NCBI GenBank assembly: GCA_946965045.2
Contig: OX337241.1
Coordinates: 3,038,001 to 3,102,000, forward strand
DNA: 64,000 nucleotides
DNA from: Epithemia pelagica
Taxonomy: Eukaryota > Protista > Bacillariophyta
Direction: 5' to 3'
Of the stretch, positions 6,806-51,419 are shown in pieces. Positions within the stretch are counted from its first letter, which is position 1; every line of letters starts with the position of its first letter. The notes beneath the pieces are model-generated. The model did no database searches. It was not told where the DNA came from and saw nothing but the letters and a program-made list of their open reading frames with translations. Made by a program: the position numbers and the translations under genes.

Positions 6806-8005
6806 ATGCCCACGACGTTGAAAGAACAAGCATGGCATTCGGGCCTTGCCTTGTTGAACGAGACACCAGAATGGAATGAAAACGATTGGCCTCCTCTTGT
6901 GGGAGGAGCGCGAGACCGTCAAACTACGGTCGTACTTGATCATCCCGATAAGGAAAACGATAACTTTCACGACAGACAAACGGTCGTCGTGATGGGAGGT
7001 TACAGACAAGCCCCAGGTGCCACGGATTCCGTTCTTGTATTGAATCTATCGGACCCAGACAAGCAGTGGCGAGAAGGACCATCCATGGACAAGACACGTG
7101 CTGGACATTCCGCTGTTGTTTGCAATGGCGGCGTGTACGTGATGGGAGGATACAATCGACTAACTTTGGATTGTATTGAACGAATCGATGCCAATGATTT
7201 GATTCAATCATCCTTTACAACCACCACCACGCAGGATAGTTATTGGACAACATTGACATGTCGATTATCAACGGGACGAGTGGGATGTTGTGCTGTTGCC
7301 GTGCACAACCGATACATCGTTGTAATGGGTGGACGCAGCAATCGTTATTGGTCGTCGGTGGATATTGTTGATACCAGTAACCACACTACCATTGAGGGAC
7401 CATCCATGACTGTTCCTCGATCATATTTTGGCAGCGCAGTCGTTGGACACCGCATCTTTGTCGTTGGAGGCCGAAACAGTGACGAAATACTTGATTCGGT
7501 GGAGTATTTGGACTTTGTAGAGGAGAGAAAAGACGACTCTTTGATGACAGTCATTTCCTCCTCGTCCGCTTGGACCACTCACTCTGAATTGGTGCTTTCC
7601 AACCCTCGAGCTTTTTGTGCAATGGTAGCCGTGGGATTTTGTCTGGTGGTGGCGGGAGGACGAGGCAATTTAAGTGTGGAAGTCTTGGATACGCTTCGCA
7701 ACCGCGTGTGGAATCTCCGTCGACTGCAAGAACAACGATGGTGCTGCAGTATGGTGACAGTTGCCAATCAAGTTGCCGTGATCGGTGGACTGGACAATCG
7801 TACCTGTGCGACATTCCCATTAATGGACAAGAATACGTGGTGTTTTCGACGACTCTATGAGCAGCCTCAGAACGAATGGTACCAGTTCCGGGAAGGAATG
7901 GGTATCCGAGATGCTGACATTTCGCGCTTTTCCACCTCGACATCAGTTCGTAAACGCGCAAGGTCCAATGCGCACCGTGGTGATGAAGGGAAGGATGAAA
8001 ATTGA
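6806..8005 (+). CDS. Kelch-repeat (6-blade beta-propeller) protein, copy K1
   Basis: Six GG-containing kelch motifs (VVVMGG, VYVMGG, IVVMGG, IFVVGG, LVVAGG, VAVIGG) with W...M...R..H/C linkers, and a C-terminal RKRAR. Start chosen by homology (AACCATG). Confidence 0.92.
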   Translation: MPTTLKEQAWHSGLALLNETPEWNENDWPPLVGGARDRQTTVVLDHPDKENDNFHDRQTVVVMGGYRQAPGATDSVLVLNLSDPDKQWREGPSMDKTRAGHSAVVCNGGVYVMGGYNRLTLDCIERIDANDLIQSSFTTTTTQDSYWTTLTCRLSTGRVGCCAVAVHNRYIVVMGGRSNRYWSSVDIVDTSNHTTIEGPSMTVPRSYFGSAVVGHRIFVVGGRNSDEILDSVEYLDFVEERKDDSLMTVISSSSAWTTHSELVLSNPRAFCAMVAVGFCLVVAGGRGNLSVEVLDTLRNRVWNLRRLQEQRWCCSMVTVANQVAVIGGLDNRTCATFPLMDKNTWCFRRLYEQPQNEWYQFREGMGIRDADISRFSTSTSVRKRARSNAHRGDEGKDEN

Positions 8006-8399
8006 AATTTGCAACGTATTGCATGTATGTCGTAACAATAGTGGAATTATAGCATTATCATATTACTCTCAAACAGTAGTTGTAGTGTTTTCTTGATGAT
8101 ATTGCGACCTATAGAGATATCATGTACACCGTTGTACTAGTAGAAAACGAAAGTTACACTATCAGGCCTTGGATATAGATGCCCATGGTACCATGCCTCT
8201 CTGCTCGTGAATGAGTCAAGTTATCTTCCACAGTAGGGGTTCGTTTGTCCGTGTTCTTTCCACTCTTTCCTCCAGTAACCGACGCATCCGGCTCTACACT
8301 AATATCTTCCTTGAGCTCTTGTTTTTTTTTGGGAGTCATGTTTGCCACCCAAAACTTGTGCCAAGAGTTGCTGTATCCTTGTCAAGAGTCTATGCTGCA

Positions 8400-9650
8400 C
8401 TCGCTTTCTTTCCTTGTCCGTGCAGGTTTCAAAGGGCAATTCCAAGACAATGGCTTGTGCCAAGGAACCGGCATAAAAGGGCAGCATGAGCATGGTCAGC
8501 GTTTTGGTCACTTTCCATCCTTGACAATGAATGGCGGCAATCACAAAGACCAACATGCCCAACAAGACAATAATGGAAATTCAAATATTTTCCGATTCAA
8601 TTTCCACGATACTCGGTTTGCTCGGCCACGCCGTAGAGAGGATCCAGGGAATGGGCAACCCGGCCAAAATGTCAAAAATATTACTCCCAATCGAACTGCT
8701 GACGGCCATGTCTCCCGATCCGCGGCGAGCGACAATGACACTGGACTACAAGTCTGGCACTGAAGTTCCAGCCGCCAAGACGGTCAATTCCCTGATAACC
8801 GATGGAATGCCCAAGGTATTTCCAATAATCTCCGTCCACAAAACCATGAGATAGGAAAAGTCTCCAATCCAGGCAATGGACAAGAAAAAGGACAGATAAG
8901 ACCATCGACCGCCCCATCCCGGTCGTCGAACACCGGGCACGGTGACGGCCAAACAAAACACGAGCCGAAAGACCACAAGGTATTGGACCAACGCCAAACA
9001 CATCGAGACGACCGAGTCGTCCGGATCGCGCGTGGGTGGTTTCAAACTTTCCCAGACCCCCCTCCTTGTCTTCTTCCACCGCCTTTTTCTGCCGTACGTA
9101 CAAGATACCTTTCGGTACCATTTCGAAAGTTCTTCAAAGGTAATTTCCTCGCGACTTCCTTCCTTATACATGGCCGACAAGGCATTGGTCACATCTTGAT
9201 CGGTAGTGGTGGGATCCAAAATCGACCAAGAGCGCTCAAATTTCATGCTTGCCCAAGGTTCCACTCTGGTTCGTGTCCAAGGTTTCAAAGATGGAATGCA
9301 CTTGCACTCGAATCAATTCTTGCGAACTGGAATACCAGGTATTGAATTCGGCTCGACTGATTTTGTCATCGCCATCTTGATCCAATTCGTTAAAGACATC
9401 GTCCAATTCTTGTTCCGTCATGGTATTGTGAACATCCAAGACGGTCTAAAGAGTCGGCGCAATTCGTCCTTGTCAATATGACCATTGCCATTTGTATCAA
9501 TCCGATCAAAGACGTAATCGGCGTCGCTGGAAATCTTGGCGACAATGCCCATTCCACCACTGTGGACCCATGATTCGGGATAGCGCAACAACTTCAGAAG
9601 TCCGGCCCGAAAGGTTCCTTGCCATTGCAAATGCGTGTTGGTATGTCGTG
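8400..9650 (-). pseudogene. Frameshifted C-terminal part of an SLC24/NCKX-type cation/Ca2+ exchanger with an EF-hand cytosolic loop
   Basis: Fragments in different frames: FRAGLLKLL; EF-hands DTNGNGHIDKDE, DQDGDDKISRAE, DTNQSGTL; alpha-repeat IGNTLGIP..LTVLAAGTSVPDL...[17 protein letters not shown]; terminal TM segments. No N-terminal alpha-1 half was recognised. Confidence 0.8.
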
Positions 9651-10538: not shown

Positions 10539-11687
10539 ATGACAACGACACTGCAAAAGCAAGCATGGCTGTCGGGCCTTGTCCTGTTAGACGATGAGAC
10601 ACCTGAATGGAATTTCGAGGACTGGCCTCCTCTTGAGGGTGGATGGCGCTGGCATCATGCTACGGTCATAATTGATCATCCCGATAACAACAAGGAACAA
10701 ACGGTCGTCGTGTTGGGAGGTTACAGACAAGCCCCAGGTGCCACGGGTTCCGTTCTTGTATTGAATCTATCGGACCCAGACAAGCAGTGGCGAGAAGGAC
10801 CATCCATGGACAAGACACGTGCTGGACATGCCGCTGTTGTGTGCAATGGCGGCGTTTACGTAATGGGCGGATTCAATCGAGTTTGGGTGGATTCTATTGA
10901 ACGAATCGATGCCAATGATTTGCTTCGATCATCTTTGACAACCACCACCACGCATGAGAGCAGTTGGACGGCATTGACATGTCGACTTTCAACGGGCCGA
11001 GATGGATGTTGTGCTGTTGCGGTGCATGATCGATACATTGTTGTAATGGGTGGCTACAGCGATCGTCATTTGTCGTCGGTGGATATTATTGATACCAGGA
11101 ACCACACTGTCACTGAAGGACCATCCATGAATGTTCCTCGATTTTGTTGTGCCAGTGCGGTCATTGGTCACCGCATCTTTGTCGTTGGAGGTCATAACGA
11201 TGAGCATGGCTGTCTTTACACGGTGGAGTATTTGGACTATGCAACACCCTGTGACAATGATGAGACAAAAAAGGAGACTGGCTCGACGTTCATTTCTTTC
11301 TCACCCACCTGGATCACTCATTCGGAGTTGAGGCTTTCCAATTCACGAGGTTCTTGTGCAATGGTTGCCATGGGATCTTGTCTAGTGGTGGCGGGAGGAG
11401 GATGGGGCAATTCAACCGTGGAAGTGTTGGATACGAACCGCAACCGCGTTTGGAATCTCCCATCACTCGGAAATGACCGCTTTGACTGCACTATGGTGGC
11501 TGTTGCCAATCAAGTTGCCGTGATTGGTGGATGGGAGAATCCTTCCTGTACAACATTACCACTCCTGGATAGAAATTCGTGGTGTTTTCGCCGTCTCTGT
11601 GAGCAGCAATCGAACGGATGGTATCATTCTCTTGAAGGTGTGGGTATCCGAGATGCTGATATCTCACACTTCTTCACATCGACATGA
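10539..11687 (+). CDS. Kelch-repeat protein, copy K2 (stops just before the basic tail)
   Basis: Six kelch GG motifs. TGA at 11685 sits where K4 has TCA, and in-frame GCTCGTAAACGCGCA (ARKRA) follows the stop. Confidence 0.9.
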   Translation: MTTTLQKQAWLSGLVLLDDETPEWNFEDWPPLEGGWRWHHATVIIDHPDNNKEQTVVVLGGYRQAPGATGSVLVLNLSDPDKQWREGPSMDKTRAGHAAVVCNGGVYVMGGFNRVWVDSIERIDANDLLRSSLTTTTTHESSWTALTCRLSTGRDGCCAVAVHDRYIVVMGGYSDRHLSSVDIIDTRNHTVTEGPSMNVPRFCCASAVIGHRIFVVGGHNDEHGCLYTVEYLDYATPCDNDETKKETGSTFISFSPTWITHSELRLSNSRGSCAMVAMGSCLVVAGGGWGNSTVEVLDTNRNRVWNLPSLGNDRFDCTMVAVANQVAVIGGWENPSCTTLPLLDRNSWCFRRLCEQQSNGWYHSLEGVGIRDADISHFFTST

Positions 11688-11689
11688 GC

Positions 11690-14680: not shown

Positions 14681-15910
14681 ATGACTCTGAAAGAACAAGC
14701 ATGGCAGTCGGACCTTTTCCTTTCAGACGAGACAGCAGAATGGAATGAAAACGATTGGCCTCCTCTTCAGGGTGGATGGCGTTTTCTTCATGCTACGGTC
14801 GTACTCGATCATCTCGACAAGGAACTCCACAACGACAACAACAAGGCACAAATTGTTGTCGTGTTGGGAGGAATTCAACAACGCCGAGGCTATGTGAATT
14901 CTATTCTTTTATTGAATCTGGCAGACCCAGACAAGCAATGGCGAGAAGGGCCACCCATGAACCAGAAACGTGCTGGACATGGCGCTGTTGTGTGCAACGG
15001 AGCCGTCTACGCCATGGGAGGTCGCACAGGAGGATACCGTGATGGAGCAAATTTGGACTGCATCGAACGCATTGATGGCAACGATCTATTACAATCATCT
15101 TTAACAACAACCAGCATCACACATGAAAGCCATTGGAAAACATTGACATGTCATTTATCAACGGGCCGATGTGGATGTTGTGCTGTCGCGGTTCACAACC
15201 GATATATCGTTGTAATGGGTGGCTACAATAATCGTTATTTGTCGTCGGTGGATATTATAGATACCAGCAATGACACTGTCACTGCAGGACCAAGCATGAC
15301 TGTTCCACGACAATGGTGTGCCAGTGCGGTCATTGGCCACCGCATCTTTGTCGTTGGAGGCCATGGCGAGCATGGTTTTCTTGACACTGTGGAGTATTTG
15401 GACTATGCCAGACCGTGTGACAATCATGAGACAAAAAAGGAAACTGGTTTGACATTCATTTCCTTCTCGACCACTTGGATCACTCATTCGGAGTTGAGGC
15501 TTTCCAATGCACAAAGTTCTTGTGCAATGGTTGCCGTTGGATCTTGTCTGGTGGTTGCGGGTGGACAAGGCCATTCAACCGTGGAAGTCTTGGATACGCG
15601 CCGCAACCGCGTTTGGAATCTCCCACCATTGGATAATCACCGCGACGACTGCAGTACGGTGACTGTTGCCAATCAAGTTGCCGTGATAAGTGGCTGGGGA
15701 AGTCCTACCTGTGCGACATTACCACTACTGGACAAGCATACGTGGTGTTTTCAACGACTCTTTGACCAGCAGTTCAACATATGGTGTCTATTTCGGGAAG
15801 GAAGGAATATCCAACATGCTGATAACTCGCCTTTCCCCACCTGGACATCAGATCGTAAACGAGCAAGGCCCCACACGCACCGTGGTGATGAAGGGAAGGA
15901 TGGAACTTGA
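14681..15910 (+). CDS. Kelch-repeat protein, copy K3
   Basis: Six kelch GG motifs, start MTLKEQAWQS as in the paralogues, C-terminal RKRAR. Confidence 0.92.
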   Translation: MTLKEQAWQSDLFLSDETAEWNENDWPPLQGGWRFLHATVVLDHLDKELHNDNNKAQIVVVLGGIQQRRGYVNSILLLNLADPDKQWREGPPMNQKRAGHGAVVCNGAVYAMGGRTGGYRDGANLDCIERIDGNDLLQSSLTTTSITHESHWKTLTCHLSTGRCGCCAVAVHNRYIVVMGGYNNRYLSSVDIIDTSNDTVTAGPSMTVPRQWCASAVIGHRIFVVGGHGEHGFLDTVEYLDYARPCDNHETKKETGLTFISFSTTWITHSELRLSNAQSSCAMVAVGSCLVVAGGQGHSTVEVLDTRRNRVWNLPPLDNHRDDCSTVTVANQVAVISGWGSPTCATLPLLDKHTWCFQRLFDQQFNIWCLFREGRNIQHADNSPFPTWTSDRKRARPHTHRGDEGKDGT

Positions 15911-16600
15911 AATTTGCAACGTACTGCATGTATGTCCTAACATTAGCGGAACTATATAGCACTCAAACAGTAGTTGGATTGTTTTCTTTATGGCATTGCG
16001 AACTATAGAGATATCATGTACACCGTTGTACTAGTAGAAAATGAAAGTTACACCATCCGGCATGAAACCGCAAACAGGAGTGGAGCCAGGCCTCGGGTAG
16101 ATGTTCATGGTACCATGCCTCTCTGCTGTTGAATGGGTCGAGTTATCATGCTGTGGAAGATTATATGGCTACGTGCCCGAAACAACATGGCGCAGCGACT
16201 TATTTGGACGGTCATCTTCGTTCCGACCATGCGTTTAATTGTGTGGAGTCCGGTCCTTCTATGGCTAATGCCTGCGTAAGAGGGCAGTGCCCCGTCTTTC
16301 GATGCTCGTGGCGGTTTTGGGTGACAGGACAATTGCGAATCCTTTGGAATTTTTCGCACCGACGTGTTCGACATTTCCTCCAATACAGCAACTATTCTAT
16401 ATCATGAGGTCGGTAATTTGCTCGCAATGGACCGAACGGCAACACGGAATCGAGTCTCGTCGTTCCCACACCACAACCTTCCGAACTACGAACGCAGCCA
16501 CAAATGAAGAAGTACCTTAATTGGACGAAACTGCTGACGGCGCTATTGCCGTGGAACCGGCTGTGTTCAATTCCATCTTGGAAGTCGGAGCATTGAGGAA
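15910..16600. repeat. Tail A module, found downstream of K1, K3, K4 and K7
   Basis: GAAATTTGCAACGTA..., TAGAGATATCATGTACACCGTTGTACTAGTAGAAAA.GAAAGTTACAC and CATGGTACCATG recur at ~8005-8230, 15910-16600, 24858-25380 and 35232-35905. Confidence 0.88.
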
Positions 16601-16604
16601 GACG

Positions 16605-17085
16605 ATTCTCCCGTGTCGGATGCATGACGTAACCGTGTCGATTCAAATGACGATTTCCCCGATGACCCTTGTACATGAAATCCTCGACAAGGCCCACATA
16701 GCTCCAAACATCGGATCGAGCCGAGTAAAAGGCCACATAGACCACCAAGGCAATCTCAGTGGCACGGATCAGCCACCATTGGGTGTCATTTGTAACCATC
16801 GAGAGTTGTCGCATCTTTATGTGGAGATTTGCTGTCCGTAGATTGGAGCGATTCGAACTTGCAAACTCTCTTGCGCTCCTCGATCTATGTTGGCAACCGC
16901 CATTGTTTCCCAATGTTGGGGCTGATCCTGGGCCTCGCAATTCAATTGTCACGGATGGAAGGAGGCCACTTTCATGGTTGTTGTCCTCAATCATCGCTTC
17001 TTGAAAAGACATGTTGGTGAAATTGATTGATAAGGTCAAGTCGTCGCCGTCCTCATCTTCGCCGTCATCGTGGTCGATGCGACGG
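16605..17085. repeat. Module B, near-identical to 42455-42935 and partly to 29270-29510
   Basis: Long shared stretch TCTCCCGTGTCGGATGCATGACGTAACCGTGTCGATTCAAATGACG...GATAAGGTCAAGTCGTCGCCGTCCTCATCT. Confidence 0.88.
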
Positions 17086-17417
17086 AGTATTCCCCATGGA
17101 CGTGTGCACTATATAGCCTGTACCTACAATCTTTATCACAGTAAAAGATACTAGGTAGAAACGCTAGGAATGTTTTGTGGCGTGGAGAACAACGGGGTCG
17201 ACGACAATGGACGATGTGGAATGTGGACGGCCATATCTCAAATTCCAAGTTCCACCCCACCACCATCACAACATGCACTGCGCAACTTTACAGCAATCGA
17301 TACCGCCCCAGATGACTTTTGATGCTTACAAGAACGAGGTTGCAATGGTCAACCATGGAACAAGAGCAGTGTCAATAATAGCTCAATGGCGCATCATGGG
17401 ATCGATTTGCCGACTGA

Positions 17418-18696
17418 TTGGCTTTTTCGGACGGCACGGTGGCCAGTGTGGCCCGACAATTGCAACGTCACATCAACCAGGTCTTGTATAATGACGCCGA
17501 ACTAGAACCTGTGGCAGATAACAAGGATGAGGTGGAGTTGCAGGGCTATGCCACCACGTTGGTGTGGAAAACACCCTTTGAGTCCTTGTATCTCGACAGC
17601 AAGAAATTCAAAACAAGCACCCTGAATCCATTGGAGGCTTTGCAATGTGCCTTGGATGACTTTGAACGCGTCAATGTCGCCCTGACAGCGGGTCGACCCC
17701 TGCCAAACGACGACAAGGACAACCAACGACGACTATCGATGGAACTGCACTGGGAAGTGTCCTTGGCTTGGTAGGAAGTCGCGTGGGAACGTCGGGTCCT
17801 CTTGGTCGGATCGTCCCACTTGCAATTGGAACGACAACTCGATTCGTCATCATGGAGTATTGTGCAACAAGACGATTTCTTGTTTGGTGGACATGACACC
17901 AACAACAACAAGAACGATCAAGTGTCCCTGTTGCGCAATCACTACCTCGCCAGGCAACTCGTGCCGCGCTTTTGGGATTTGTATCACATTGGCATGACAC
18001 CGTCCGCCGAAGTGCAACCCCACGTCACGGTCCAAACGAAACGTGGTCATGAAATTCGGGAGTGGCCCGGACGATGGTACGTGACACCCACCGTGGTCGA
18101 TACCCGCATGGATCGGACGGTGCAATTGGCCCAAGTCTTGCCCAGTCATGCCTTTGGCGTGTCGGCTCTGTCGACTGTGGGACCGACCCAAGAATGGGGT
18201 GTTGTTGCAATGGCAAATTCCTCTTTCGGTCGAACTTCAGTCGCAACTCGTGTGGCCTCCCGCCACCAGCAAGGACGTTGAAGATGAGGACGAACCAGAC
18301 ACGACAGCCGAGGAGGACGAGTCGTCGTCCCCGAGTACCACGACAACTACGACGACGACAAGCATGGAACCCGCGTGTCGGTATACATGGGTGGGCCCCC
18401 GACGAGTGGCGGTCGTTCCCTTTGGTGGCACGGGGCTCCAAGATGAAGGCATTCCGGCGGAGCGACAAGCCTTGTATCAAGCCGTGATCCAAGATGGACA
18501 GTACCAACCCAAACTCACCACCGCAACAACGACTGGAACGGGTCGTCCCCAATTCACCTTTTGGAACCAGGCCTTCAAGGGCTGCTTTACGGCAAATGGA
18601 TTGGGCATGGCGGTCTATGAATGGCGACCCAATGCACTGCCCTGGCTGGCCCAAAACCATTATGTCGGGTTGGAGCTCCAAGTGCCCGAACCATAA
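17418..18696 (+). pseudogene. Interrupted SOUL haem-binding-like gene; 5' part duplicated at ~48790-49400
   Basis: Three successive frames (17418, 17802, 18148). The C-terminal part RRVAVVPFGG...ERQALY..V..DG...GRPQF...KGCFT..GLGMAVYEWRP...VGLEL resembles SOUL-family C-termini. Confidence 0.55.
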
Positions 18697-22932: not shown

Positions 22933-23646
22933 TGGCTCTCGTTGAGGTCGAACGTCGTCGTCGCTGTCGTCGTTTTAATGGGGTGGTATGATCCGGCACA
23001 ATTCCTCCTCGGCGGGGATCATGTGAGTGGATACGCAATGTTTTCTATTTTGAGGTGTATGCGAAGCGCGAGGATTCTCGGTGGGTCGCAACCCCTTGCA
23101 AGTGATTACGGATTCTCAGAAAGACAGAGTCACTTCTGTGTCCTCCCATACAGAATCGGATACAGTAATACCTACATGTGACACCACACAAGACAGAAAA
23201 TGAGACAACCCACGGTCACTGTTCGACGACCAGACGACGTCGGCCACTCTCTCTCGTCGTTTGTGGTCGACGACAATGGACGTAATGGACCGACTGACGG
23301 TGTGTGTTCGCGTCCATCTCTCTCAAGGGAAGCTTTTCAACCCCATCAGATGAATTGCGTACAACGACAGGCACCCGTGTCATGTTGTGGACTCCGACGA
23401 TCAATCAGCAGTACTAGCAGGATGGAACAACAAGAGCAATGTCAACAAGAACAGGTCGGTCGAAGCAACTGTCACGATTTGTCTCGTGACGAAAGCTCCT
23501 ACCCCTCTTTGGTCCATCCATTTCGTCAAGTCAGTCGTGCTTCCAGTCCGCATCAATCAGAATCACAACTGTAGAGCAAACCTACGTGCCTCTTACAATA
23601 CAGTGCGTCGATCCTCATAAATTCTGCAGTTGAAACCTTTGCAACC

Positions 23647-36195: not shown

Positions 36196-36408
36196 TGTTG
36201 AAACCTGTAATGAACCGTGCTGTAAAGGCAACAATTCCTATAACAAATTACGTATTCTCCTTAGAATGAGCTCTGTTGTTTGTTTCGTTGCTCTTCCGTC
36301 CACGTCGTTTTACCTCAACCCATTCGTCATCACTTGCAGATGGATCTTCGCCTTGCTCAGTCGCTGTTTTCGTTTGTTCTGCGACTCCTCGCGGGACATC
36401 CTTCAACA
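36196..36408 (-). repeat. 3' LTR (213 bp)
   Basis: Direct repeat of 42119-42331 with TG...CA ends. Confidence 0.97.
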
Positions 36409-39820: not shown

Positions 39821-41338
39821 TTAGAAGAGGCCTTCAGGACTTTGCACAAACTTGTGCTTCAAGCGCCCCGTGGCTGGGTCAAGTAGTTGAAATTGATTGC
39901 CCTCATGGCTGTCGTATGTAATGCAGTATCTGTTTTGAGCGGTGTGGAAAGATAAAATGTTGGCAGGCCCTTTGGGGTCATACCATACCAAGCCATATCC
40001 TGGCAATATCGCTTGTTGGTTCAGGATTCGTTCTCCGGCATGGCTGCTGATGGTGATTGGTGTCGTTGCTTGATGGATGTTGTGGAGAATGCTTGCATTG
40101 TGGATGATGTCCACTGTGGATTGATTGTCGAGCAGGATCCAGTCAGGGGATATGTTAGACTGTAAGGCAGAAAAAGAACAGTGTTGAGAAGATGCGTTTT
40201 GGTTCAACATGGATTGGTGGTAGACTGTACCGTTTGAGTTGTCTCTGTTTCTGTTGTTGGAGTCGGTTCCCTGAGCTGACTGTTGCCCATTTTGCGATTG
40301 GCTCTGACCCGTAGTGGTCATTGTGGATCCTGTTAACGTGGAGGCATCATCGCCTTGCGTACTGGCACTCTCGCGCGTGTGATAGGCCACAACTGTGGCG
40401 TTGTTATCGTTGCTTTGTGTCTGGTGGCGACTATGCGTCTGCATTCTGTTATCTATGATGGCACGCGCATCGGCCAGTGTCTTTGGGTAACAGTTGCGTT
40501 TGTCCATGTCCAAGTAAGCGTTTTGTAGATGCGATTCATATTCGCGAGCGCCACATGTTCTGATGAAACGGATGGCCAGACACCTCTGTTGAGCTTCTTC
40601 TTCGTCAGCCGTTGTTGGTGACCCAGCACGACTGTTGTCAGCCGCTACTTGCTCCAGTAGATCCTTGTCGTATAACACCACGTTCAGTTCCTCCAGGACT
40701 TGCGCTTTTGCGCGAAACAACTCGTAGTAGTTGTGCAAACTTTGGTTTTTACCCCTGCGCATCGTGTAGAACTCTCCCTTGAGCTTATCACGACCGACGA
40801 GAGGATAAATGCGCCCGGAATCATATGTAAAGGTAGTCTGTTTGATCAATTTCAACAAAGCTATACCGTCGCGCTTCTTCCGAATGTTATCATATTGCGT
40901 CTTCGCCTGTAGTTTGTCTTTTATCAACTGGGTACACTGCCCCAGGATGAGACTAAACATGGCGGCGCGGAAATTCTGATACTCCATCAACTGCTCAGCT
41001 CGCATTTTATACTTCATCTTCCACTCTTCTACGGTAATGGTGTCTTTGTCATCTTTCGGTAGTTCTACCTGGTCAGGTTCATCCAGTGACAATTCCTCCA
41101 CTGACTGCTGGAACTCCAGATTATATCGGTTGAATGTTGAGCCAATGTAACCGACCAGATACTCTACATTGCGCAGGTACCGCTTGGACTGCGGATCTTC
41201 GGAGTAGTCGAAGATACAGTCTTTTAATGTGGGTTCTTGTCCTTGAAACTTGTTCGAGTTTCCTTGTTGTCCTCTGCCACCACGTCCTCGACCACGACCA
41301 CCACGTCCTTGTCCGCTTCTTCCTCCGCGTCCGGTCAT
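39821..41338 (-). CDS. Copia gag-protease (RGG-rich N-terminus; protease WILLDNQST)
   Basis: Track ORF of 505 aa with CoDi-type protease motif LLDNQSTVD. It ends at a TAA in frame with the integrase. Confidence 0.88.
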   Translation of the reverse strand: MTGRGGRSGQGRGGRGRGRGGRGQQGNSNKFQGQEPTLKDCIFDYSEDPQSKRYLRNVEYLVGYIGSTFNRYNLEFQQSVEELSLDEPDQVELPKDDKDTITVEEWKMKYKMRAEQLMEYQNFRAAMFSLILGQCTQLIKDKLQAKTQYDNIRKKRDGIALLKLIKQTTFTYDSGRIYPLVGRDKLKGEFYTMRRGKNQSLHNYYELFRAKAQVLEELNVVLYDKDLLEQVAADNSRAGSPTTADEEEAQQRCLAIRFIRTCGAREYESHLQNAYLDMDKRNCYPKTLADARAIIDNRMQTHSRHQTQSNDNNATVVAYHTRESASTQGDDASTLTGSTMTTTGQSQSQNGQQSAQGTDSNNRNRDNSNGTVYHQSMLNQNASSQHCSFSALQSNISPDWILLDNQSTVDIIHNASILHNIHQATTPITISSHAGERILNQQAILPGYGLVWYDPKGPANILSFHTAQNRYCITYDSHEGNQFQLLDPATGRLKHKFVQSPEGLF

Positions 41339-42060
41339 GCCGCCGCTTGACGACTCAGCTTGATCGGGCCGTGGTCCTTGCGGGGGGTGTACTCATGGTG
41401 TTCTTGACGCGGTGCTAGGTTTTGTCGTTGTCTACGGTGTTCCTCTTGGTCGTGGGTGAAAGGATTGTATACCTGGATGGTGTATACAGTTCTTCGACCG
41501 TTCGCCTTTCCTCGCGACAACACTACTCCTTTCAGATGAGACCGTTTTTGCACCCGAGCCAACTTGAGGGGATTCAGAACCCAGACGGCACTACCGATAG
41601 CCAGAACCGGTGGAATGGATGATGCGTTGGCTGGCAAAACGGGGATATTGTAAATAATCTCCACTCGTCCGTTCTCGTCTCGTACCACTTCTTCGGCGTC
41701 GAGAAAACCAGATGCGTCCCGCGACGATTCCTCGTCTCCACTGGTATTGTCCGGCACGACGGCGGCTGCCACTGCAGTTCGATGCTCCTCGGTTTGTACG
41801 TCCACAATTAACGCGCGACGTCTTGTCTGAAAATCGGATACGATCCGTTCTCGTGATGCTGTCAGCACCGTGTTATCGTATTCGACCTCCGCCTGATGTT
41901 GTTGTTCCAACTCGGTTCGGTGTTCACGAAAGGTCGCCTCGCGCAACCGCACGTTGTGCTGGTGCCGACGATGCACCTCTGCAAGGCGTTCTTGTTCTTC
42001 AATGGAAAGGGCGGTGAGTTGGTTCAACAACGTAGTCAAACGACTGGGATTCTCCGACAT
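41335..42060 (-). CDS. Extra ORF (241 aa) upstream of gag inside the Copia element
   Basis: Open frame between the PBS and gag, with a coiled-coil-like N-half and a beta-rich basic C-half. Its TGA overlaps the gag ATG (ATGA). Confidence 0.65.
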   Translation of the reverse strand: MSENPSRLTTLLNQLTALSIEEQERLAEVHRRHQHNVRLREATFREHRTELEQQHQAEVEYDNTVLTASRERIVSDFQTRRRALIVDVQTEEHRTAVAAAVVPDNTSGDEESSRDASGFLDAEEVVRDENGRVEIIYNIPVLPANASSIPPVLAIGSAVWVLNPLKLARVQKRSHLKGVVLSRGKANGRRTVYTIQVYNPFTHDQEEHRRQRQNLAPRQEHHEYTPRKDHGPIKLSRQAAA

Positions 42061-42104
42061 GCAGTGTACTTCACCTCAAAATGAGAATCAAGAGGTAGTT
42101 CTGT

Positions 42105-42118
42105 TTCTAAGGAGAATA
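42105..42118 (-). other. Candidate self-priming primer-binding site
   Basis: The 14 nt abutting the 5' LTR (plus strand TTCTAAGGAGAATA) are the exact reverse complement of LTR 42176-42189 (TATTCTCCTTAGAA). No TGG-starting tRNA-type PBS is present. Confidence 0.7.
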
Positions 42119-42331
42119 TGTTGAAGCCTGTAACGAACCGTGCTGTAAAGGCAACAATTCCTATAACAAATTACGTATTCTCCTTAGAATGAGCTCTGTT
42201 GTTTGTTTCGTTGCTCTTCCGTCCACGTCGTTTTACCTCAACCCATTCGTCGTCACTTGCAGATGGATCTTCGCCTTGCTCAGTCGCTGTTTTCGTTTGT
42301 TCTGCGACTCCTCGCGGGACATCCTTCAACA
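42119..42331 (-). repeat. 5' LTR (213 bp)
   Basis: Direct repeat of 36196-36408 with TG...CA ends. Confidence 0.97.
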
Positions 42332-42963: not shown

Positions 42964-43720
42964 GGATACTCGGTATTTTTTGTGGACCACATACAAATAT
43001 AGACAAACTTCCACAAACTACGATGTCGTATAGACTTTTTGTTGTATAGCTCTACTTATTAAGACCGTTATAAGACGGTATACTACAATACCCCCAATGC
43101 GGAGTTGAGCGATGTGGATAAATGTTGTCAATTGTTGATAATTGTTGAGCGTGCCATGTTCCTAAATAGACAAATAGAAAATTCTAAGTAGAATTGTTTT
43201 TCTGCTGCTCCCCCAAAGCCCCCAAAAAATTAGTCCCGAATGCATCGCATGCAGTCACAGTTGACTGCATAGCACATGGCACGAAATTTCTTTGCCATGT
43301 GCAACATGATGAGTTTGACATGATGAATGCTTATGTGTTCTTTTCTCGATCGTCGTGCATCGTGCAAGTTGACCATGGCCGACGGTACGGTGGAAATGGC
43401 GGTTCAGACTGGTTGTTTCGACAGCCTTGTCTGGACGAATCCACAAATCCACAAATCCACAAATCCACAAATCCACAAATCCACAAATCCACAAATCCAC
43501 AAATCCACAAATCCACAAATCCACAAATCCACAAATCCACAAATCCACAAATCCACAAATCCACAAATCCACAAATCCACAAATCCACAAATCCACAAAT
43601 CCACAAATCCACAAATCCACAAATCCACAAATCCACAAATCCACAAATCCACAAATCCACAAACGACGCAACAACACAAACGACGCAACAATCAAACAAC
43701 TGCTACTATGGGTTAATGTT
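42964..43720 (+). repeat. Left terminal inverted repeat (757 bp)
   Basis: Reverse complement of 48015-48721, apart from repeat copy number, two small indels and scattered substitutions. Confidence 0.95.
43441..43663 (+). repeat. (CCACAAAT)n microsatellite, about 28 units, inside the left TIR
   Basis: Perfect 8-bp tandem repeat, 223 bp. Confidence 0.98.
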
Positions 43721-43747
43721 CTACGGAGTCATCGGCCAGTCAGGACG

Positions 43748-44347
43748 TTAAGTTGTTTCACTTTTCTCTTTTGTCTGTCTCGCTTTTTCTCGGACCTTCT
43801 TTCTCCTTTTCTCTGCAGCTTCTTCCTTGAGAACTCGTTTCTGCTCCAGGTACACGAGAAACTTCTGGCGACGCTGTTCTTGATAGACGCGTTGTCGAAA
43901 GATGTCTGGTCGAAACTTGAGGTAGGCCTGCCGCGAATGGTGCAGCGCCGACATTGTCATCGTCTGCGGCTTCCCACATTCGACATCTTGCTCCAAAAAA
44001 GTCTTTGCTTCGGACATGTCGAAGACTGGTTCCGCACGATGGTTGACGAAGGCACGCGGATACAACTGACGGTCGTGGACGAGAGCCGCTTCTTCGTGCT
44101 GACGCTGAGCATGGTCGCGTCGCACCTGTTTCCGGTGGCCTGCGAGTCGGGCCTTGAATTGGTCAAAGACCACACCCTCAACAATAAACACAGGTTCCAA
44201 GGCGTAGATCTCCCAAGCTTCCTGGGCTGTGATATCAAGTGGAAGAACGCCGCTTTCCAAGTCCAGCAACAAGATGGATCGACTTTCGGAGTTTCTCCAG
44301 TCGATCCACCCGTCTTTGGATGATTGGGCCATGGTTAAAAACAACAA
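43748..44347 (-). CDS. Transposon ORF-A (199 aa); two internal helical repeats and a basic tail, possible DNA-binding protein
   Basis: WRNSESRSILLLDLESG...FKARL and FDMSEAKTFLEQDVECG...FRQRV look like two copies of one module. KRRKKVREK tail. Confidence 0.65.
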   Translation of the reverse strand: MLFLTMAQSSKDGWIDWRNSESRSILLLDLESGVLPLDITAQEAWEIYALEPVFIVEGVVFDQFKARLAGHRKQVRRDHAQRQHEEAALVHDRQLYPRAFVNHRAEPVFDMSEAKTFLEQDVECGKPQTMTMSALHHSRQAYLKFRPDIFRQRVYQEQRRQKFLVYLEQKRVLKEEAAEKRRKKVREKARQTKEKSETT

Positions 44348-44644
44348 TCAAACACGGTACTTGCTGCTCTGTTCTCTCAGTGCTGGTCGCACGTCCCAAT
44401 GCTTGCGACTTTGTTGAGCCCAGAAGGGGCTCAAGAAAGAAAACACAACAAGAAAGGAGAACTCGACTCGGCTTCACATTCTTTTCGTTTCCGAACACAA
44501 CAATCACGACCTGGTCACGAGTCACAGCATTGCTGTCGCCAGACAGCACCTAATGCCATCAATATCCGCCAGCATAACCCATTTACATAGCAAAAGAATT
44601 CAAACTAGTAACATATTCTATACAGGAGTGGTTATCCAAATAAG

Positions 44645-46228
44645 ATGCATTGTCTTGCTCGACTCTCTCCTTGGAAACTCGCATGCAACAGACAAAATCT
44701 CACAATGTCAAAAAAAAACTCCAAAGCAAACAACAAAGTAAGGATTCACCTGTCGGGTCTTCAGACTCTTGAGCTTTTAAGAGACGTTGAGAAGCTCAAC
44801 AAGAGTCGACAGAGCCTCCGTTTTGTCTCGATCTGCGACAGGTACCCCAATACATACGGGGAAAGTGGTTCGTTGCTCCGCAGAGCATTTCAGACCAAGT
44901 GGAGCTACTTCAAGAAGCTTCCTATTGACCAGTACGTTTCTCGCCTCAAGGAACTGAAGGTCCAACCTTCTGATAAGACCTACCAAGAACTTGGCGAGTC
45001 GCAGAAGTCAGCGACCGAGGAAGAGAAGAAGGAACCCGAGACCAAGCCAGAGAAGAAGGAACCCAACGGGGAAGACGCAAGCGACTGCACCCCACCCGAC
45101 TCCGACGAGGAGTACACTGTTGACAGCGCAGAAGGCTTTGGCCTCAACGCCATCACCGACGCCATAATCCCTCCTACTCGTGCTCTCTCGAAGCAACCGA
45201 CCAAGAAAGTTGTTGCGTTTGCTGAGGCGCGCCGCTCAACCCCGACTCCAACACATTCTGTTCCATTGGAAACAGCCCCCCCTTCGAAGATTGTTGATTC
45301 ATCCACGAGGACACCGTTGATTGTTGATAACAAGAAGATGAGTGTTCCTGATTTGACTTCAAGCTTTTCGTCCCTCGAGGTAACCAATTCTTCTTCCCGA
45401 GTTCTTGAGGGAACCAAGGAGAATCCATTCGTCATCTATGTGGATCTGGATCACCCCGAGAGGAACAGGGAGTTCGAGGTCTTGTATGTGATCGACATGG
45501 TTTACAACGAGCACACCTGGAACAGCGTTTACATTCACCGATCGATTTCGCCAGGTAGCTCGGACTACACCACTTGGGAAGCACAGATCCCCAAGCCCGA
45601 AGAGTACACGCATATCCCTGGCCCCAAGGTGTTGATCAAGGGAGTTTCCAGGGACTTCTGGCTGAGGAATGTGCGACGATACCATTCTCACCCCAGAATG
45701 GGTCCTCGATGCAAGGCGTTTATCCAGGAGCACAACAAGACATACTTCGCTGTCAAGGGCAGCAAAGAGCGAGAGATGGCTTACTGGATTCTTGTTTTCC
45801 CGTCGAAAATAGTTCTGGACAACTCCGTCCTTGCTGGTGAGGAGTATGAAATACCAACAGAGATGATCCCTCTCACAATTAATCATGAGGAGGAGGACGG
45901 CGACAAAGTGCAATTCGAGGGTGGCCCAACTGGTGATCATGCTGCCAGTGTTGCTCGAGGTGAGGCAGCAGCAACGATGGCGGAGTCCGATTCTACGACT
46001 GCAAGCATTGTGGAGTTGGAGTCACAAGCGGAGAATGAAGACGAAGACGAGGATCTCCCGAATGGTATGCTTGGGATGATTGTCTTTTGGCGCATCGTCG
46101 TCAAGGGATCGTCGAGGCGTGCAAAGAACAAGCAACGCAAACAGGGAGTCAAGGATTTGTTTCTCCTCAGGGCAATGGTAAGACGACTCGGAAGAAAAAG
46201 TTTTGAGTCTTGGTACGAGTACCAGTAG
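44645..46228 (+). CDS. Transposon ORF-B (about 510-527 aa); N-terminal helical domain, possibly the Myb/SANT-like partner of the transposase
   Basis: Long open frame inside the TIRs, with a basic helical N-terminus, a low-complexity linker and a globular C-half. The SANT assignment is inference from PIF/Harbinger architecture only. Confidence 0.7.
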   Translation: MHCLARLSPWKLACNRQNLTMSKKNSKANNKVRIHLSGLQTLELLRDVEKLNKSRQSLRFVSICDRYPNTYGESGSLLRRAFQTKWSYFKKLPIDQYVSRLKELKVQPSDKTYQELGESQKSATEEEKKEPETKPEKKEPNGEDASDCTPPDSDEEYTVDSAEGFGLNAITDAIIPPTRALSKQPTKKVVAFAEARRSTPTPTHSVPLETAPPSKIVDSSTRTPLIVDNKKMSVPDLTSSFSSLEVTNSSSRVLEGTKENPFVIYVDLDHPERNREFEVLYVIDMVYNEHTWNSVYIHRSISPGSSDYTTWEAQIPKPEEYTHIPGPKVLIKGVSRDFWLRNVRRYHSHPRMGPRCKAFIQEHNKTYFAVKGSKEREMAYWILVFPSKIVLDNSVLAGEEYEIPTEMIPLTINHEEEDGDKVQFEGGPTGDHAASVARGEAAATMAESDSTTASIVELESQAENEDEDEDLPNGMLGMIVFWRIVVKGSSRRAKNKQRKQGVKDLFLLRAMVRRLGRKSFESWYEYQ

Positions 46229-46367
46229 AGTACATCACATGAAAAACTTCTTTGTGTTGTCGACAGCGACTCAGAGGCAATTGTTTCTTGGCCACTGTAC
46301 ACAGCATAAACATGCATATGAATATTGGTAGTGAGTAATCAGGTAGTAGTTTGTCGTTAAGATTTCA

Positions 46368-47339
46368 CTATTGTATTAGAACTATCAATCTTGTAGAGCA
46401 CCTACTCCTTCTCCTAGACTTGGAAACCTCAGCGCCATTATCCATTTGGTATTGCACAATGACGCATACAGCCTCGAAGGCGATTTTGTGTTTCTCTTTG
46501 CCATGACGAAAGGTGTCTTCCATCGCTCGGAAGTTTTTAATCCGTCCGTTGACACTTTCATGGCGACAGCGCGCACGGCTCTTGAAGCTCTTGAGCTCGG
46601 CACTGTCTCCGTGATACGGTAGGGAAAGCATTGACTGCTCGTGCTTGTCGTCTGAGCGGTATCCACGGTCAGCAATTACCTTTTTTCCTGGACCAATCTT
46701 CTGCTTGAGCCCTGCACGAAATACCGTTAAGTCATGTACAGCAGCTTTGAAGGGGCCATTTGTCCATACAATTTTTGGTTGAAACACAGCAACACCCAGT
46801 TCATACTTCACACCGCCATGATTGAACTTTGGGGAATAGGCCCCCTTGTCACGGTGATGGATGGGATGCTTGGGCTCCCACGTTTTGAAGTCCACTCCAT
46901 CCACAGTAAGGCAAAAAATTTCCGAGAAATCTGGCCAGGTGATTTTAATCGTCTTCATCGCCTGTATCTTCTCAATCCAACGCCACAGCCTCTTACCTTG
47001 GCAGTAGGACGCGCATACATTGAATACCGAGGCAAGAAGTTCGGCATTCTTGGGATAGACCCAAAGAAAGTAGATAGCCATAAGGAATTGCCGTAGGCCA
47101 CTCGTTGTCATCTCCTTCTCTAATAGCAAGCATTCGCCATTGACCGACGCATGTGCAAGGTCAAACCATAGAGAAGCAACAACTAAAGTAGACGAACCAT
47201 AATGCTTATGGAAAAGGTCGCTGTACTTCGTGCTCTCTCGTGCACAAGGAGGAGGATGGATGCCAAGGAAGTTCAATCCTTGCATCATCATTTCGTGAGG
47301 CGTTAGAAGCATCTTTGAATTACTATAAGAAATGTACAA
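46368..47339 (-). CDS. DDE_Tnp_4-type (PIF/Harbinger/ISL2EU-related) transposase
   Basis: TVDGVDF, YSPKFNHGGVKYE, GPFKAAVHDLTVFR, VIADRGY, RARCRHESVNGRIK give the catalytic D, D, E pattern. Confidence 0.9.
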   Translation of the reverse strand: MYISYSNSKMLLTPHEMMMQGLNFLGIHPPPCARESTKYSDLFHKHYGSSTLVVASLWFDLAHASVNGECLLLEKEMTTSGLRQFLMAIYFLWVYPKNAELLASVFNVCASYCQGKRLWRWIEKIQAMKTIKITWPDFSEIFCLTVDGVDFKTWEPKHPIHHRDKGAYSPKFNHGGVKYELGVAVFQPKIVWTNGPFKAAVHDLTVFRAGLKQKIGPGKKVIADRGYRSDDKHEQSMLSLPYHGDSAELKSFKSRARCRHESVNGRIKNFRAMEDTFRHGKEKHKIAFEAVCVIVQYQMDNGAEVSKSRRRSRCSTRLIVLIQ

Positions 47340-47465
47340 GTAGATGAAGCCTGTGTTCTGACTACTTTATTTTAGCGATAACAAGTAGACGAACTCGTTT
47401 TTGTAAACGCGAACACGAGTGGTCACAATTTTCCCGTTCTCTTTGATTGTTGGATACTACGCACC

Positions 47466-47945
47466 ATGGCGGACGAAGAATTTGAGATTGGCTGCCGCAT
47501 TGCCTTCACAGGAGGCACTTACGTTGGCATGAAGGGCTGGAGGAATGCCAGCAAGCAGGATACTGCAAAGATGGCGTACGTCGCTATCGAGAAGGAAAAT
47601 GGGCGGAAAAAGTGGACGAGGGTCCGCAAAGTGAACGTGAAGGAGATCCCCGACAACGAAGAGCCCCCCGACAACCTCGAAGATGCCATCCTCGACCAGC
47701 AAAAGGACGTCGAGGCACTTCTCCGCAAGCTTTGTAAGAAAATTGTGATGTGTGGGGTGACCGATTCATCCAGGATGACCCAGATCTTCCAGCTGTATCT
47801 CCACGACGCAATCCTGACCCAGAATACCCTTGGTCCTGCAGCAGATTGGAAGTGGGTTGTATTCGAACCCGTCGAGAATCAGTCCAATGCGACTGCTGCA
47901 CCGACTGCAGTACGTGCTGACCCTGTGGGGGGACAAACCATGTGA
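47466..47945 (+). CDS. Transposon ORF-D (159 aa); KOW/SH3-like N-terminus plus a helical domain
   Basis: FEIGCRIAFTGGTYVGMKGW...AYVAIE...WTRVRKVNV resembles a KOW motif. Open frame with strong coding-like codon bias. Confidence 0.6.
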   Translation: MADEEFEIGCRIAFTGGTYVGMKGWRNASKQDTAKMAYVAIEKENGRKKWTRVRKVNVKEIPDNEEPPDNLEDAILDQQKDVEALLRKLCKKIVMCGVTDSSRMTQIFQLYLHDAILTQNTLGPAADWKWVVFEPVENQSNATAAPTAVRADPVGGQTM

Positions 47946-48014
47946 GCGTGAAAGACCGCAACAACCAAGAATCAAGACAGTCCTCGCCCTTCGGCTCATT
48001 TACTTACCTTAGTC

Positions 48015-48721
48015 AACATTAACCCATAGTAGCAGAGATAAGATGTTTGATTGTTGCGTCGTTTGTGTTGTTGCGTCGTTTGTGGATTTGTGGATTTGTG
48101 GATTTGTGGATTTGTGGATTTGTGGATTTGTGGATTTGTGGATTTGTGGATTTGTGGATTTGTGGATTTGTGGATTTGTGGATTTGTGGATTTGTGGATT
48201 TGTGGATTTGTGGATTTGTGGATTTGTGGATTTGTGGATTTGTGGATTTGTGGATTCGTCCAGACAAGGCTGTCGAAACAACCAGTCTGAACCGCCATTT
48301 CCACCGTACCGTCGGCCATGGTCAACTTGCACGATGCACGACAATCGAGAAAAGAACACATAAGCATTCATCACGTCAAACTCATCATGTTGCACATGGC
48401 GAAGAAATTTCGTGCCATGTGCTATGCAGTCAACTGTGACTGCATGCGATGCATTCGGGACTAATTTTTTGGGGGCTTTGGGGGAGCAGCAGAAAAACAA
48501 TTCTACTTAGAATTTTCTATTTGTCTATTTAGGAACATGGCACGCTCAACAATTATCAACAATTGACAACATTTATCCACATCGCTCAACTCCGCATTGG
48601 GGGTATTGTAGTATACCGTCTTATAACGGTCTTAATAAGTAGAGCTATACCACAAAAAGTCTATTCGACATAGTAGTTTGTGGTAGTTTGTCTATATTGG
48701 TATGTGGTCCACCGAGTATCC
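48015..48721 (-). repeat. Right terminal inverted repeat (707 bp)
   Basis: Reverse complement of 42964-43720. Confidence 0.95.
48079..48253 (-). repeat. (ATTTGTGG)n microsatellite, about 22 units, inside the right TIR
   Basis: Perfect 8-bp tandem repeat, 175 bp, inverted relative to 43441-43663. Confidence 0.98.
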
Positions 48722-49400: not shown

Positions 49401-50252
49401 AGATCCACGGCCTGTACACAGTGTCCTTGCTTCTCGTTGACTCGGTATGCGTAAGGAACCAACAACCAGACAGACTTGAGCCTTCATTGCATGGTTAACA
49501 TCAACAACAATAAAACATCACCTTCGTCACTGTTACGGGCATTCTCCGCTTGCGCTTCAAGGCCTGCAGCAACTGGATTGTCCTTTTTTCGTCATGTTTC
49601 TTCTTGTTCTTGGAAAAGAATACTACAAGGACTCTACTTGTCTCGACCAGAAACGTTCCACTTGGTACCCACCAACAAATTGCTGTTCTACTACAATAGG
49701 AGATTGGAAACAAATCTTGGTTGCAGGCAAGGAGCATCCTGCCATTCTTGCTGTACGAGTCGAGAGGATGACGGAGGAGCACATGCCCTATTGTTGTAAT
49801 AAGCTAGTTCCCAAGGGCATTTGTCAGGGCTCGGACAATGGCGGAAAAGAGAGACGTATTGCTGGGGTTCTTTGCGAAAGGCACCACACGAAACACTGTG
49901 AACTACTAGGACGACGCATCCCGAACAGTACAGGGCGACGAAACTGGCCTTTGCCAGTACCACGAGACAACGACAGGCACCCGTCATGATGTCCATCAAT
50001 CAGCAGTACTAGCAGGATGGAACAACAAAAGAGCAGTGTCAACAAGAAGAGGTCGGTCGAAAGCAACCTTCACGATTTGTCTCGTGACGAAAGCTCGTAC
50101 CACTCTTTGGTCCATCCATTTCGTGCAGTCAGTCGTGCTTCCCGTCCGCACCCATCAGCATCGGCATCACAACAACAGAGCAAACCTACACGTGCCTCTT
50201 ACAAGACAGTGCCTCGATCCTCATAAATTCTGTAGCCAAAACATTAAGAACC

Positions 50253-51419
50253 ATGTCCATGACATTGAAAGAACAAGCATGGCAGTCGGGCCTTGTCTTA
50301 TCGGACGACACAGCAGAATGGAATTTCGAGGACTGGCCTCCTCTTGAGGGTGGATGGCGTACGCTTCATACATCGGTCGTACTAAATCATCCCGTTAAGA
50401 GCAACTATAACAACGACAAGGCACAAACAGTCGTGGTGATGGGAGGATGCGACAAAGGTTGGAATACTACCAATTCCATTCTTGCATTGAATCTTGCAGA
50501 ACCGAACATACAGTGGCGAGAAGGACAACCTATGAACCAGAAACGTAACGGACATGCCGCCGTTGTGTGCAACGGAAGCGTCTACGTGATGGGAGGATAC
50601 TCTGAAGGTTCATGTTTAAATTGTATCGAACGAATTGACGTACAGGATTTGCTGCAATCACCATTTACAACCACCACCACTCAGGATAGTCATTGGACGA
50701 CATTGACATGTCGATTATCAACGAAACGAAAAGGATGTTGTGCTGTTGCGGTTCACAACCGAAACATCGTTGTAATGGGTGGCTATGGCGGTGGTGGAAC
50801 GTTGTCGTCGGTGGATATTATTGATACCAGCAACCACACTGTCGCTGCTGGACCAAGCATGGCTGTTCCTCGACAATTTTGTTCCAGTGCGGTCATTGGA
50901 CACCGCATCTTTGTCGTTGGAGGTCATAAGGATAATGGCAATCTTGACTCAGTGGAGTATTTGGACTATGCAACACCCTGTGACAATGATGCGACAAAGA
51001 AGGAGATAGGCTTGACATTCATTTCTTTCTCACCCACCTGGACCACTCAGTCTGGGTTGAGGCTTTCCAATGCACGAAGATATTGTGCAGTGGTTGCCGT
51101 GGGATCTTGTCTGGTTGTGGCGGGAGGATGGGGTTCAACCGTGGAAGTCTTGGATATTCACCGCAACCGCATGTGGAATCTCCCACCATTCACTAACTAC
51201 CGCAATGGCTGCAGTCTAGTGACTGTTGCCAATCAAGTTGCCGTGATTGGTGGATGGGACAATCCTACCTGTGCGACATTACCACTTCTGGATAGAAATT
51301 CATGGTGTTTTCGACGACTCTGTAAGCAGCCTCGGAACGAATGGTATTACTATCTAGAAATATCGGGCAACGGAGATGTCAATGTAACATCCAGGACCAT
51401 CTCGACATCCACTCTATAA
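50253..51419 (+). CDS. Kelch-repeat protein, copy K8 (different C-terminal tail)
   Basis: Six kelch GG motifs. After WCFRRLCKQPRNEWY the tail is unrelated to the paralogues and has no RKRAR. Confidence 0.9.
   Translation: MSMTLKEQAWQSGLVLSDDTAEWNFEDWPPLEGGWRTLHTSVVLNHPVKSNYNNDKAQTVVVMGGCDKGWNTTNSILALNLAEPNIQWREGQPMNQKRNGHAAVVCNGSVYVMGGYSEGSCLNCIERIDVQDLLQSPFTTTTTQDSHWTTLTCRLSTKRKGCCAVAVHNRNIVVMGGYGGGGTLSSVDIIDTSNHTVAAGPSMAVPRQFCSSAVIGHRIFVVGGHKDNGNLDSVEYLDYATPCDNDATKKEIGLTFISFSPTWTTQSGLRLSNARRYCAVVAVGSCLVVAGGWGSTVEVLDIHRNRMWNLPPFTNYRNGCSLVTVANQVAVIGGWDNPTCATLPLLDRNSWCFRRLCKQPRNEWYYYLEISGNGDVNVTSRTISTSTL

Follow-up and report, generated by a model that had tools for sequence, protein, structure and literature searches.

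A tandem array of stand-alone Kelch propeller genes in Epithemia pelagica with diversifying selection on the D-A and B-C loops

A 64,000-nucleotide window of the diatom Epithemia pelagica (contig OX337241.1, positions 3,038,001 to 3,102,000, assembly GCA_946965045.2) contains a tandem array of seven intact, intronless Kelch-only genes, all on the forward strand, plus one 5'-truncated copy. The D-A and B-C loops of these Kelch propellers are under diversifying selection and the remainder of the propeller is constrained; the copies are mosaics built by recombination between paralogues. The array belongs to a very large family of stand-alone six-blade Kelch proteins, traced so far to a single assembly and most likely a repertoire of intracellular binding proteins. 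A preliminary description of this DNA had proposed a diversifying recognition repertoire, with variable loops carried on a nearly fixed scaffold.

The window is eukaryotic DNA with a GC content of 43-51% and long intronless open reading frames (ORFs). The seven intact Kelch ORFs encode 386-424 amino acids (aa), with pairwise identities of 62-71% in protein and 75-88% in DNA. The copies, in their order along the window, are as follows.

K1, 6806-8005 (+): intact gene with Kelch repeats only, 400 aa when read from the conserved ATG, identified by its ORF and a Pfam Kelch_1 match (E 3.7e-29)
K2, 10539-11687 (+): intact propeller; a stop shortens the C-terminal tail; second 5' leader type
K3, 14681-15910 (+): intact; the usual ATG is lost and an in-frame ATG two codons downstream is used
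K4, 23647-24858 (+): intact; reference for residue numbering and for the structure model
K4-K5 spacer, 24859-27535 (no strand): shares 97-100% identity with its counterparts on three other contigs
K5, 27536-28684 (+): intact propeller; short divergent tail (28630-28684)
K6, 31393-32613 (+): intact
K8, 34789-35229 (+): 5'-truncated copy with blades 5-6 and the tail only, about aa 258-403; found by tblastn
K7, 50253-51419 (+): intact propeller; a stop shortens the tail

Diversifying selection on the D-A and B-C loops

Selection was measured in a codon alignment of 29 copies, comprising the seven from the window and 22 full-length copies found on seven further contigs of the assembly. Maximum-likelihood (ML) codon models were run in our own GY94/F3x4 code with separate trees for four gene segments, and residues were classed as strand, top (D-A and B-C loops), bottom (A-B and C-D loops) or tail. 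Gene-wide, the nonsynonymous rate (dN) was 0.20 and the synonymous rate (dS) 0.38. Pooled Nei-Gojobori estimates of omega (dN/dS) were 0.89 for top loops, 0.41 for bottom loops, 0.29 for strands and 0.61 for tails, and the ML partition estimates were 1.02, 0.59, 0.33 and 0.60, respectively; equal omega for top and bottom loops was rejected (likelihood ratio test statistic, LRT, 71; p 3e-17). Comparison of models M1a and M2a gave an LRT of 256, with 6.9% of codons at omega 3.7, and comparison of M7 and M8 gave an LRT of 270, with 7.2% of codons at omega 3.35. Overall, the site models placed 5-7% of codons at omega 3.4-4.0.

Sixteen codons had a posterior above 0.95 for omega >1, and every one of them lay in a top loop (16 of 117 top-loop codons versus 0 of 240 others; Fisher p 9e-9, or 2e-4 against bottom loops alone). 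Diversification of these loops, which the preliminary description had put forward, was borne out by the M7-M8 comparison and by all 16 sites. In K4 they are residues 37, 38, 96, 98, 115, 119, 120, 159, 206, 207, 223, 228, 291, 312, 316 and 334, and they recur in corresponding positions from blade to blade: one or two residues past the inter-blade Arg (R+1, R+2), at the residue after the GG pair (GG+1), and in the middle of the B-C loop. When seven per-blade trees were used, the LRT was 208 and 14 of 15 selected sites were on the top face.

The 18 positions defined only by motif (R+1, R+2 and GG+1), tested against their own synonymous rate, had an omega of 2.30 in the 29 copies (p 3e-6) and of 3.27 in the seven window copies alone (p 0.0015), as compared with 0.32 at bottom-face control positions. 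In cross-validation, sites picked on the non-window copies gave an omega of 3.31 in the seven window copies (p 0.0026), with a dN of 1.08 versus a dS of 0.68, and a ratio to the gene-wide dS of 2.8 (2.1-3.7). The dS of 0.68 at selected codons in the window copies compares with 0.38 in the rest of the gene; this elevation could reflect old lineages kept under balancing selection, or multi-nucleotide changes.

Other parts of the protein behaved differently from the selected sites. The disordered insertions CD2 and CD4, like the low-complexity loop AB1, had omegas of 0.47-0.67 and zero selected sites, the constant N-terminal and post-propeller segments had omegas of 0.26-0.46, and the scaffold had omegas of 0.17-0.33. 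Neither an even spread of substitutions over the structure nor an omega at or below 1 at the loop sites was observed.

Diversity was also examined at the protein level in 113 paralogues. A Shannon entropy above 2.5 bits per alignment column was reached at 14 of 117 top-loop sites, as compared with 0 of 81 bottom-loop sites and 0 of 133 strand sites, and up to 15 different residues occurred at the hypervariable top-loop sites. A 16-residue face signature was unique in 109 of the 113 paralogues. The hypervariable sites were composed of 10.9% Tyr, 6.5% Trp and 10.6% Arg, as compared with 0.4%, 0% and 5.2% in the bottom loops; protein-binding hot spots typically show such enrichment in these three residues.

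The motifs described from the sequence alone were confirmed. The strings cited as a nearly fixed scaffold in seven full copies were invariant or differed in one or two copies. All of the variable quartets listed past the inter-blade Arg were recovered, together with one more (RSYC in K5), as were the variable loops after GG with their insertions and deletions, including that of K3, in which the B-C loop of blade 2 is four residues longer than in other copies. Variability had been noted in blades 2, 3, 4 and 6; it was confirmed there, and blades 1 and 5 also proved to carry hypervariable positions (K4 residues 37, 38 and 291).

Fold, recombination and extent of the family

All seven intact copies have the repeated Kelch signature of a GG doublet, conserved Tyr/Trp and inter-blade Arg and matched Pfam Kelch_1 (E 1e-29 to 1e-36, with scores of 98-124 bits where the cut-off is 20.1), and Kelch-type families, among them PF24681 (E 1e-20 to 1e-28), were the only Pfam matches in them. 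An AlphaFold2 model of K4, built from an alignment of the 113 paralogues, had six four-stranded blades with a core predicted local distance difference test (pLDDT) score of 80-94; disorder was predicted for residues 1-21 and 344-403 and for the insertions at 136-142 and 241-252. Foldseek matched the model to KLHL12, KLHL20, KLHL3, Keap1, NS1-BP and designed six-blade Kelch proteins (E 1e-16 to 1e-19), with target-normalised template modelling scores of 0.75-0.82. The copies are thus predicted to fold as a closed six-blade Kelch propeller. The protein plan begins with about 36 conserved N-terminal residues, followed by the six blades, a conserved post-propeller WCFRRLCEQQ.NGW and a disordered tail, in which a basic K[RH][AL]R motif is present in 67 of 113 members. 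Two nearly invariant segments, DWPPL (K4 residues 22-31, 23710-23739) and WCFRRL (residues 349-354, 24691-24708), both fit the Kelch D-strand pattern; neither is confidently placed in the model (both ends have pLDDT <50), and either might close blade 6.

As the preliminary description had stated, no BTB or F-box domain accompanies the propeller. Pfam detected no BTB, BACK or F-box in the seven copies, whose N-terminal stretch ahead of blade 1 is only about 36 residues long, and no F-box in eight distant relatives; in longer relatives (505-849 aa) it detected Kelch matches and no other domain. DNA similarity between units is limited to the coding sequence (CDS), about 40-280 bp upstream of it and 200-500 bp downstream, so the units share no additional exon in which a BTB or F-box could be encoded. 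A search by pattern only for the BC-box, [STPA]LxxxCxxx[AILV], matched one of 113 paralogues, at residue 156, and never the tail. Among the members scanned, there was no hydrophobic N-terminus, signal peptide or membrane anchor.

In topology tests, every one of the four gene segments rejected the trees of the other three, with log-likelihood differences of 100-700 and approximately unbiased test p values far below 0.001. Over its 3' half, K4 matched copies on two other contigs at every nucleotide (100% identity), whereas the nearest relatives of its 5' half were only 85-86% identical. The coding sequences that flank the K4-K5 spacer were 75-90% identical to their counterparts at loci L005, L006 and L007, as compared with 97-100% for the spacer itself, which places breakpoints within genes; identity falls off gradually from the spacer into the coding sequence. 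The near-identical spacers could result from recent block duplication followed by gene conversion, or could be uncollapsed haplotypes. Two paralogues on other contigs, P0005 and P0032 (442 and 589 aa), carry an internally duplicated blade segment, indicating that unequal exchange within genes changes the number of blades. Collectively, these data identify the copies as mosaics of recombining paralogues.

The ends of some copies also differ. The similarity of K2 to the other copies runs on in frame past its stop, to 11738, and the stops of K2 and K7 (11685-11687 and 51417-51419) fall within an otherwise alignable C-terminal tail. The KRAR...GDEGKD tail is absent from three of the seven window copies (K2, K5 and K7). 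By blastn, K8 sits in a duplicate of the 3' half of K3 plus its downstream DNA (15467-17711).

Searching 5.8 billion proteins yielded 823 matches. The best 120 of the 823 were clusters 64-84% identical to the query and were spread over at least 20 long contigs, and representatives at 50% identity included more distant Kelch-only relatives at 40-57% identity. All 20 relatives traced to their source (clusters at 43-76% identity) came from ENA assembly ERZ21939226. Seven other array loci in the same assembly (L001-L007) supplied the 22 additional full-length copies, and many fragmentary family ORFs are found elsewhere in it. Searches of the ESM Atlas gave generic Kelch or lipase clusters only. 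Literature searches on Kelch family expansion, tandem arrays and diatoms returned no description of such a family.

Four sequencing runs of the organism behaved as DNA over 23300-29200, with spacers covered and contigs of up to 509 kb; their summed depth over coding sequence was very high, owing to the paralogues. Of the 31-letter words sampled from the same interval, 6-11% were present in a biofilm metagenome and a marine sediment metagenome, a hint that the organism, or one closely related to it, lives in a benthic marine habitat.

Leaders, neighbouring genes and mobile elements

Beyond the Kelch copies themselves, the window contains a leader motif and several other features.

Leader motif GATCCTCATAAATTC, 23610-23624 (+): upstream of K4; family-specific
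LRR-TIR gene, 19529-22932 (-): two overlapping ORFs between K3 and K4
Copia-type long terminal repeat (LTR) retrotransposon, 36196-42331 (-): inserted in the K8 unit
PIF/Harbinger-like transposon, 42982-48712 (no strand): likewise inserted in the K8 unit; bounded by terminal inverted repeats of 634 bp that are 98.7% identical

The motif GATCCTCATAAATTC lies 23-37 nt upstream of the start in K1 (at 6769-6783), K3, K4, K5, K6 and K7, giving six observed matches against 0.13 expected by chance. Across the 29 copies two leader types were found, both ending in ACC ATG. The first, CYCATAAATTC...GGAACC ATG, precedes about 18 of the 29 copies (window and loci L001-L007); the second, GCTGCCATTTCT.GTCGAC.TTG.AAAGCGCCGTGACC ATG, precedes K2 and about nine others. 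Within the Kelch array at locus L003 (5340-6165), a near-copy of the K6 leader, including GATCCTCATAAATTC, stands before a non-Kelch ORF with a weak match to PLDc_2 (phospholipase D/nuclease). Judged from sequence, this arrangement suggests that the leader is a shared promoter module.

The 788-aa ORF of the LRR-TIR gene matched Pfam LRR_6 (E 1.2e-6) and TIR (E 1.7e-5; 25.2 bits against a cut-off of 21.3). A literature search on TIR and LRR proteins in diatoms returned only general immune papers. Between K1 and K2, a reverse-strand ORF (8746-9288) matched Na_Ca_ex at E 7e-6 over profile positions 1-52 only and is probably a fragment of a sodium/calcium exchanger gene. Among the window units, no conserved ORF was present in the spacers and no co-varying partner gene lay beside the copies.

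Both mobile elements lie within the duplicated DNA that corresponds to the region downstream of K3. The LTRs of the copia element (36196-36408 and 42119-42331) are 98.6% identical, indicating that its insertion into the array was recent.

A probable binding repertoire and its alternatives

Several observations weigh against reading the array as a repertoire of binding faces. The mean entropy of top and bottom loops did not differ (1.21 and 1.06 bits; Mann-Whitney p 0.41). Since the hypervariable sites are confined to the top, the concentration of variation on the ligand face that had been claimed from the sequence belongs to this hypervariable subset and not to the loops generally. The top and bottom classes were assigned from the strand order in the model rather than from three-dimensional coordinates, and the codon models were self-implemented, with branch lengths fixed from nucleotide trees. 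Recombination inflates the site test: a single replicate simulated under the M1a null, with hidden recombination within the analysis segments, gave an LRT of 17.6, an omega of 1.8 and one site. This inflation is about an order of magnitude below the observed LRT. The tail is lost in three of the seven window copies, and some copies may be decaying. Of the seven other array loci, a single one has LRR/TIR neighbours, and that locus is itself a duplicate of this region. No RNA run was among the sequencing runs found (the four of the organism and the two metagenomes). Finally, binding by the variable face is an inference, and its ligand and partner are putative.

Relaxed constraint on surface loops combined with recombination artefacts would account for the variable loops with neither selection for change nor a recognition role. 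Rampant recombination, the inflated M1a-M2a comparison in the null simulation, the fairly free bottom loops and tails (omega about 0.6) and the similar mean entropies all speak for it. However, relaxation cannot carry omega above 1, and the estimates ranged from 2.3 to 4.0 (p 0.003 to 1e-59); the least constrained parts of the protein, CD2, CD4 and AB1, stayed below 1 with no selected site; the observed LRT was more than 10 times that of the recombination null; and enrichment in Tyr, Trp and Arg is unlike free loops. We consider this explanation very unlikely. We give still less credence to a dead array made up of the non-functional remnants of a duplication burst. One truncated copy, three shortened tails, two transposon insertions and the fragmentary family ORFs elsewhere in the assembly would be expected of such remnants, but seven of eight frames of about 400 codons remain open at a dS of about 0.38, the scaffold is under purifying constraint, and the start context and leader motifs are conserved.

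Two further alternatives accept that the propellers bind something and differ in what is bound. The copies might be substrate receptors of ubiquitin ligases that serve endogenous regulation through an unrecognised adaptor motif, their variation reflecting subfunctionalisation. The closest structures and Pfam models are indeed ligase receptors (KLHL12, KLHL20, KLHL3, Keap1 and PF24681, the KLHDC2/KLHL20 model), and the constant N-terminal and post-propeller segments could dock a common partner. Nevertheless, BTB, BACK and F-box domains are lacking, the BC-box pattern occurs once and in an unrelated place, every traced relative comes from a single assembly, and endogenous substrates would not be expected to sustain an omega of 3-4 or near-unique faces in more than 100 paralogues; this alternative is therefore unlikely. 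Slightly further down the scale stands a role in self/non-self or mate recognition, or as a selfish driver of the poison-antidote kind, in which the partner would be another gene of the same species that also evolves fast. Incompatibility and drive loci, too, typically combine tandem arrays and gene conversion with a positively selected binding face, and a family traced so far to only one assembly would suit them. Against this, no co-varying partner gene or conserved spacer ORF accompanies the copies, several hundred copies are far above the usual number for such systems, and a signal peptide or membrane anchor for recognition at the cell surface is missing. We judge it improbable.

A repertoire of intracellular binding proteins is the reading we favor as the most likely. 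Strands, bottom loops and the constant end segments are held by purifying selection, and some 5-7% of codons, on the presumed binding face, are pushed to change faster than the synonymous rate. Recombination or gene conversion among paralogues, both within arrays and between contigs, reassorts blade segments, so that nearly every copy bears a unique face. The variable face would bind ligands that are themselves fast-evolving, such as those of a pathogen, a virus or a selfish element, and binding may be linked to downstream events either by the constant end segments or by the LRR-TIR protein encoded nearby. An immune or effector-like role may be proposed by analogy and from the presence of the LRR-TIR gene inside the array. 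In its most specific form, this would be a germline system of innate recognition that uses Kelch propellers where other systems use LRR or Ig domains. Hundreds of propellers, each with its own top face rich in Tyr, Trp and Arg, and kept diverse by positive selection and exchange between paralogues, would sense viral or bacterial proteins and signal through their end segments to LRR-TIR-like partners, a possibility that we regard as tentative and rather doubtful.

Comparison with known systems places the selected surface in context. In Keap1, the B-C and D-A loops form the substrate surface. The substrate-binding surface of KLHL20 is likewise shaped by its B-C and D-A loops (PMC6720452). The family described here shares the six-blade propeller of the BTB-BACK-Kelch proteins of the KLHL/Keap1 group, and their substrate face is the site of selection here; unlike them, it has no BTB or BACK domain, comprises more than 100 paralogues in tandem arrays, and evolves at omega >1 on a binding face that is conserved in KLHL proteins. 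Like the CRL2 receptors KLHDC2, KLHDC3 and KLHDC10, it has a Kelch propeller with no N-terminal adaptor and matches PF24681. KLHDC2-type receptors carry a C-terminal BC-box/Cul2-box and are encoded by single-copy, conserved genes, whereas the BC-box pattern is absent from the tails here.

The F-box and MATH-BTB expansions of nematodes and plants are similarly large, tandem families with fast turnover, and such families were reportedly proposed by Thomas in 2006 to target pathogen proteins. In Caenorhabditis F-box genes, dN/dS exceeds 1 in the part that binds substrate, and the adaptor is conserved (PMC8665587); plant F-box-Kelch genes are cited there as showing a similar pattern (Schumann 2011, cited in PMC8665587). 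The present family differs in that it has no F-box or BTB module, and hence no known ligase link, and in that the variable module is a complete, stand-alone propeller in a protist. The LRRs of plant NLRs, the B30.2 domain of TRIM5 and the MHC offer another parallel, combining a conserved scaffold, a hypervariable binding surface with omega >1 and clustered genes whose diversity is shuffled by gene conversion or unequal crossing-over. Here, however, the fold is Kelch, no signalling domain is present in the same polypeptide, and a function in immunity would be by analogy.

To our knowledge, little is known of how diatoms and other microalgae recognise viruses, parasites or bacteria. If the proposed reading is true, the array would represent a new scaffold for a germline recognition repertoire. 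Protein engineers may also find the family useful as a naturally occurring collection of Kelch binding faces that share one constant framework, and its members provide concrete candidates for ligand searches and for infection transcriptomics.

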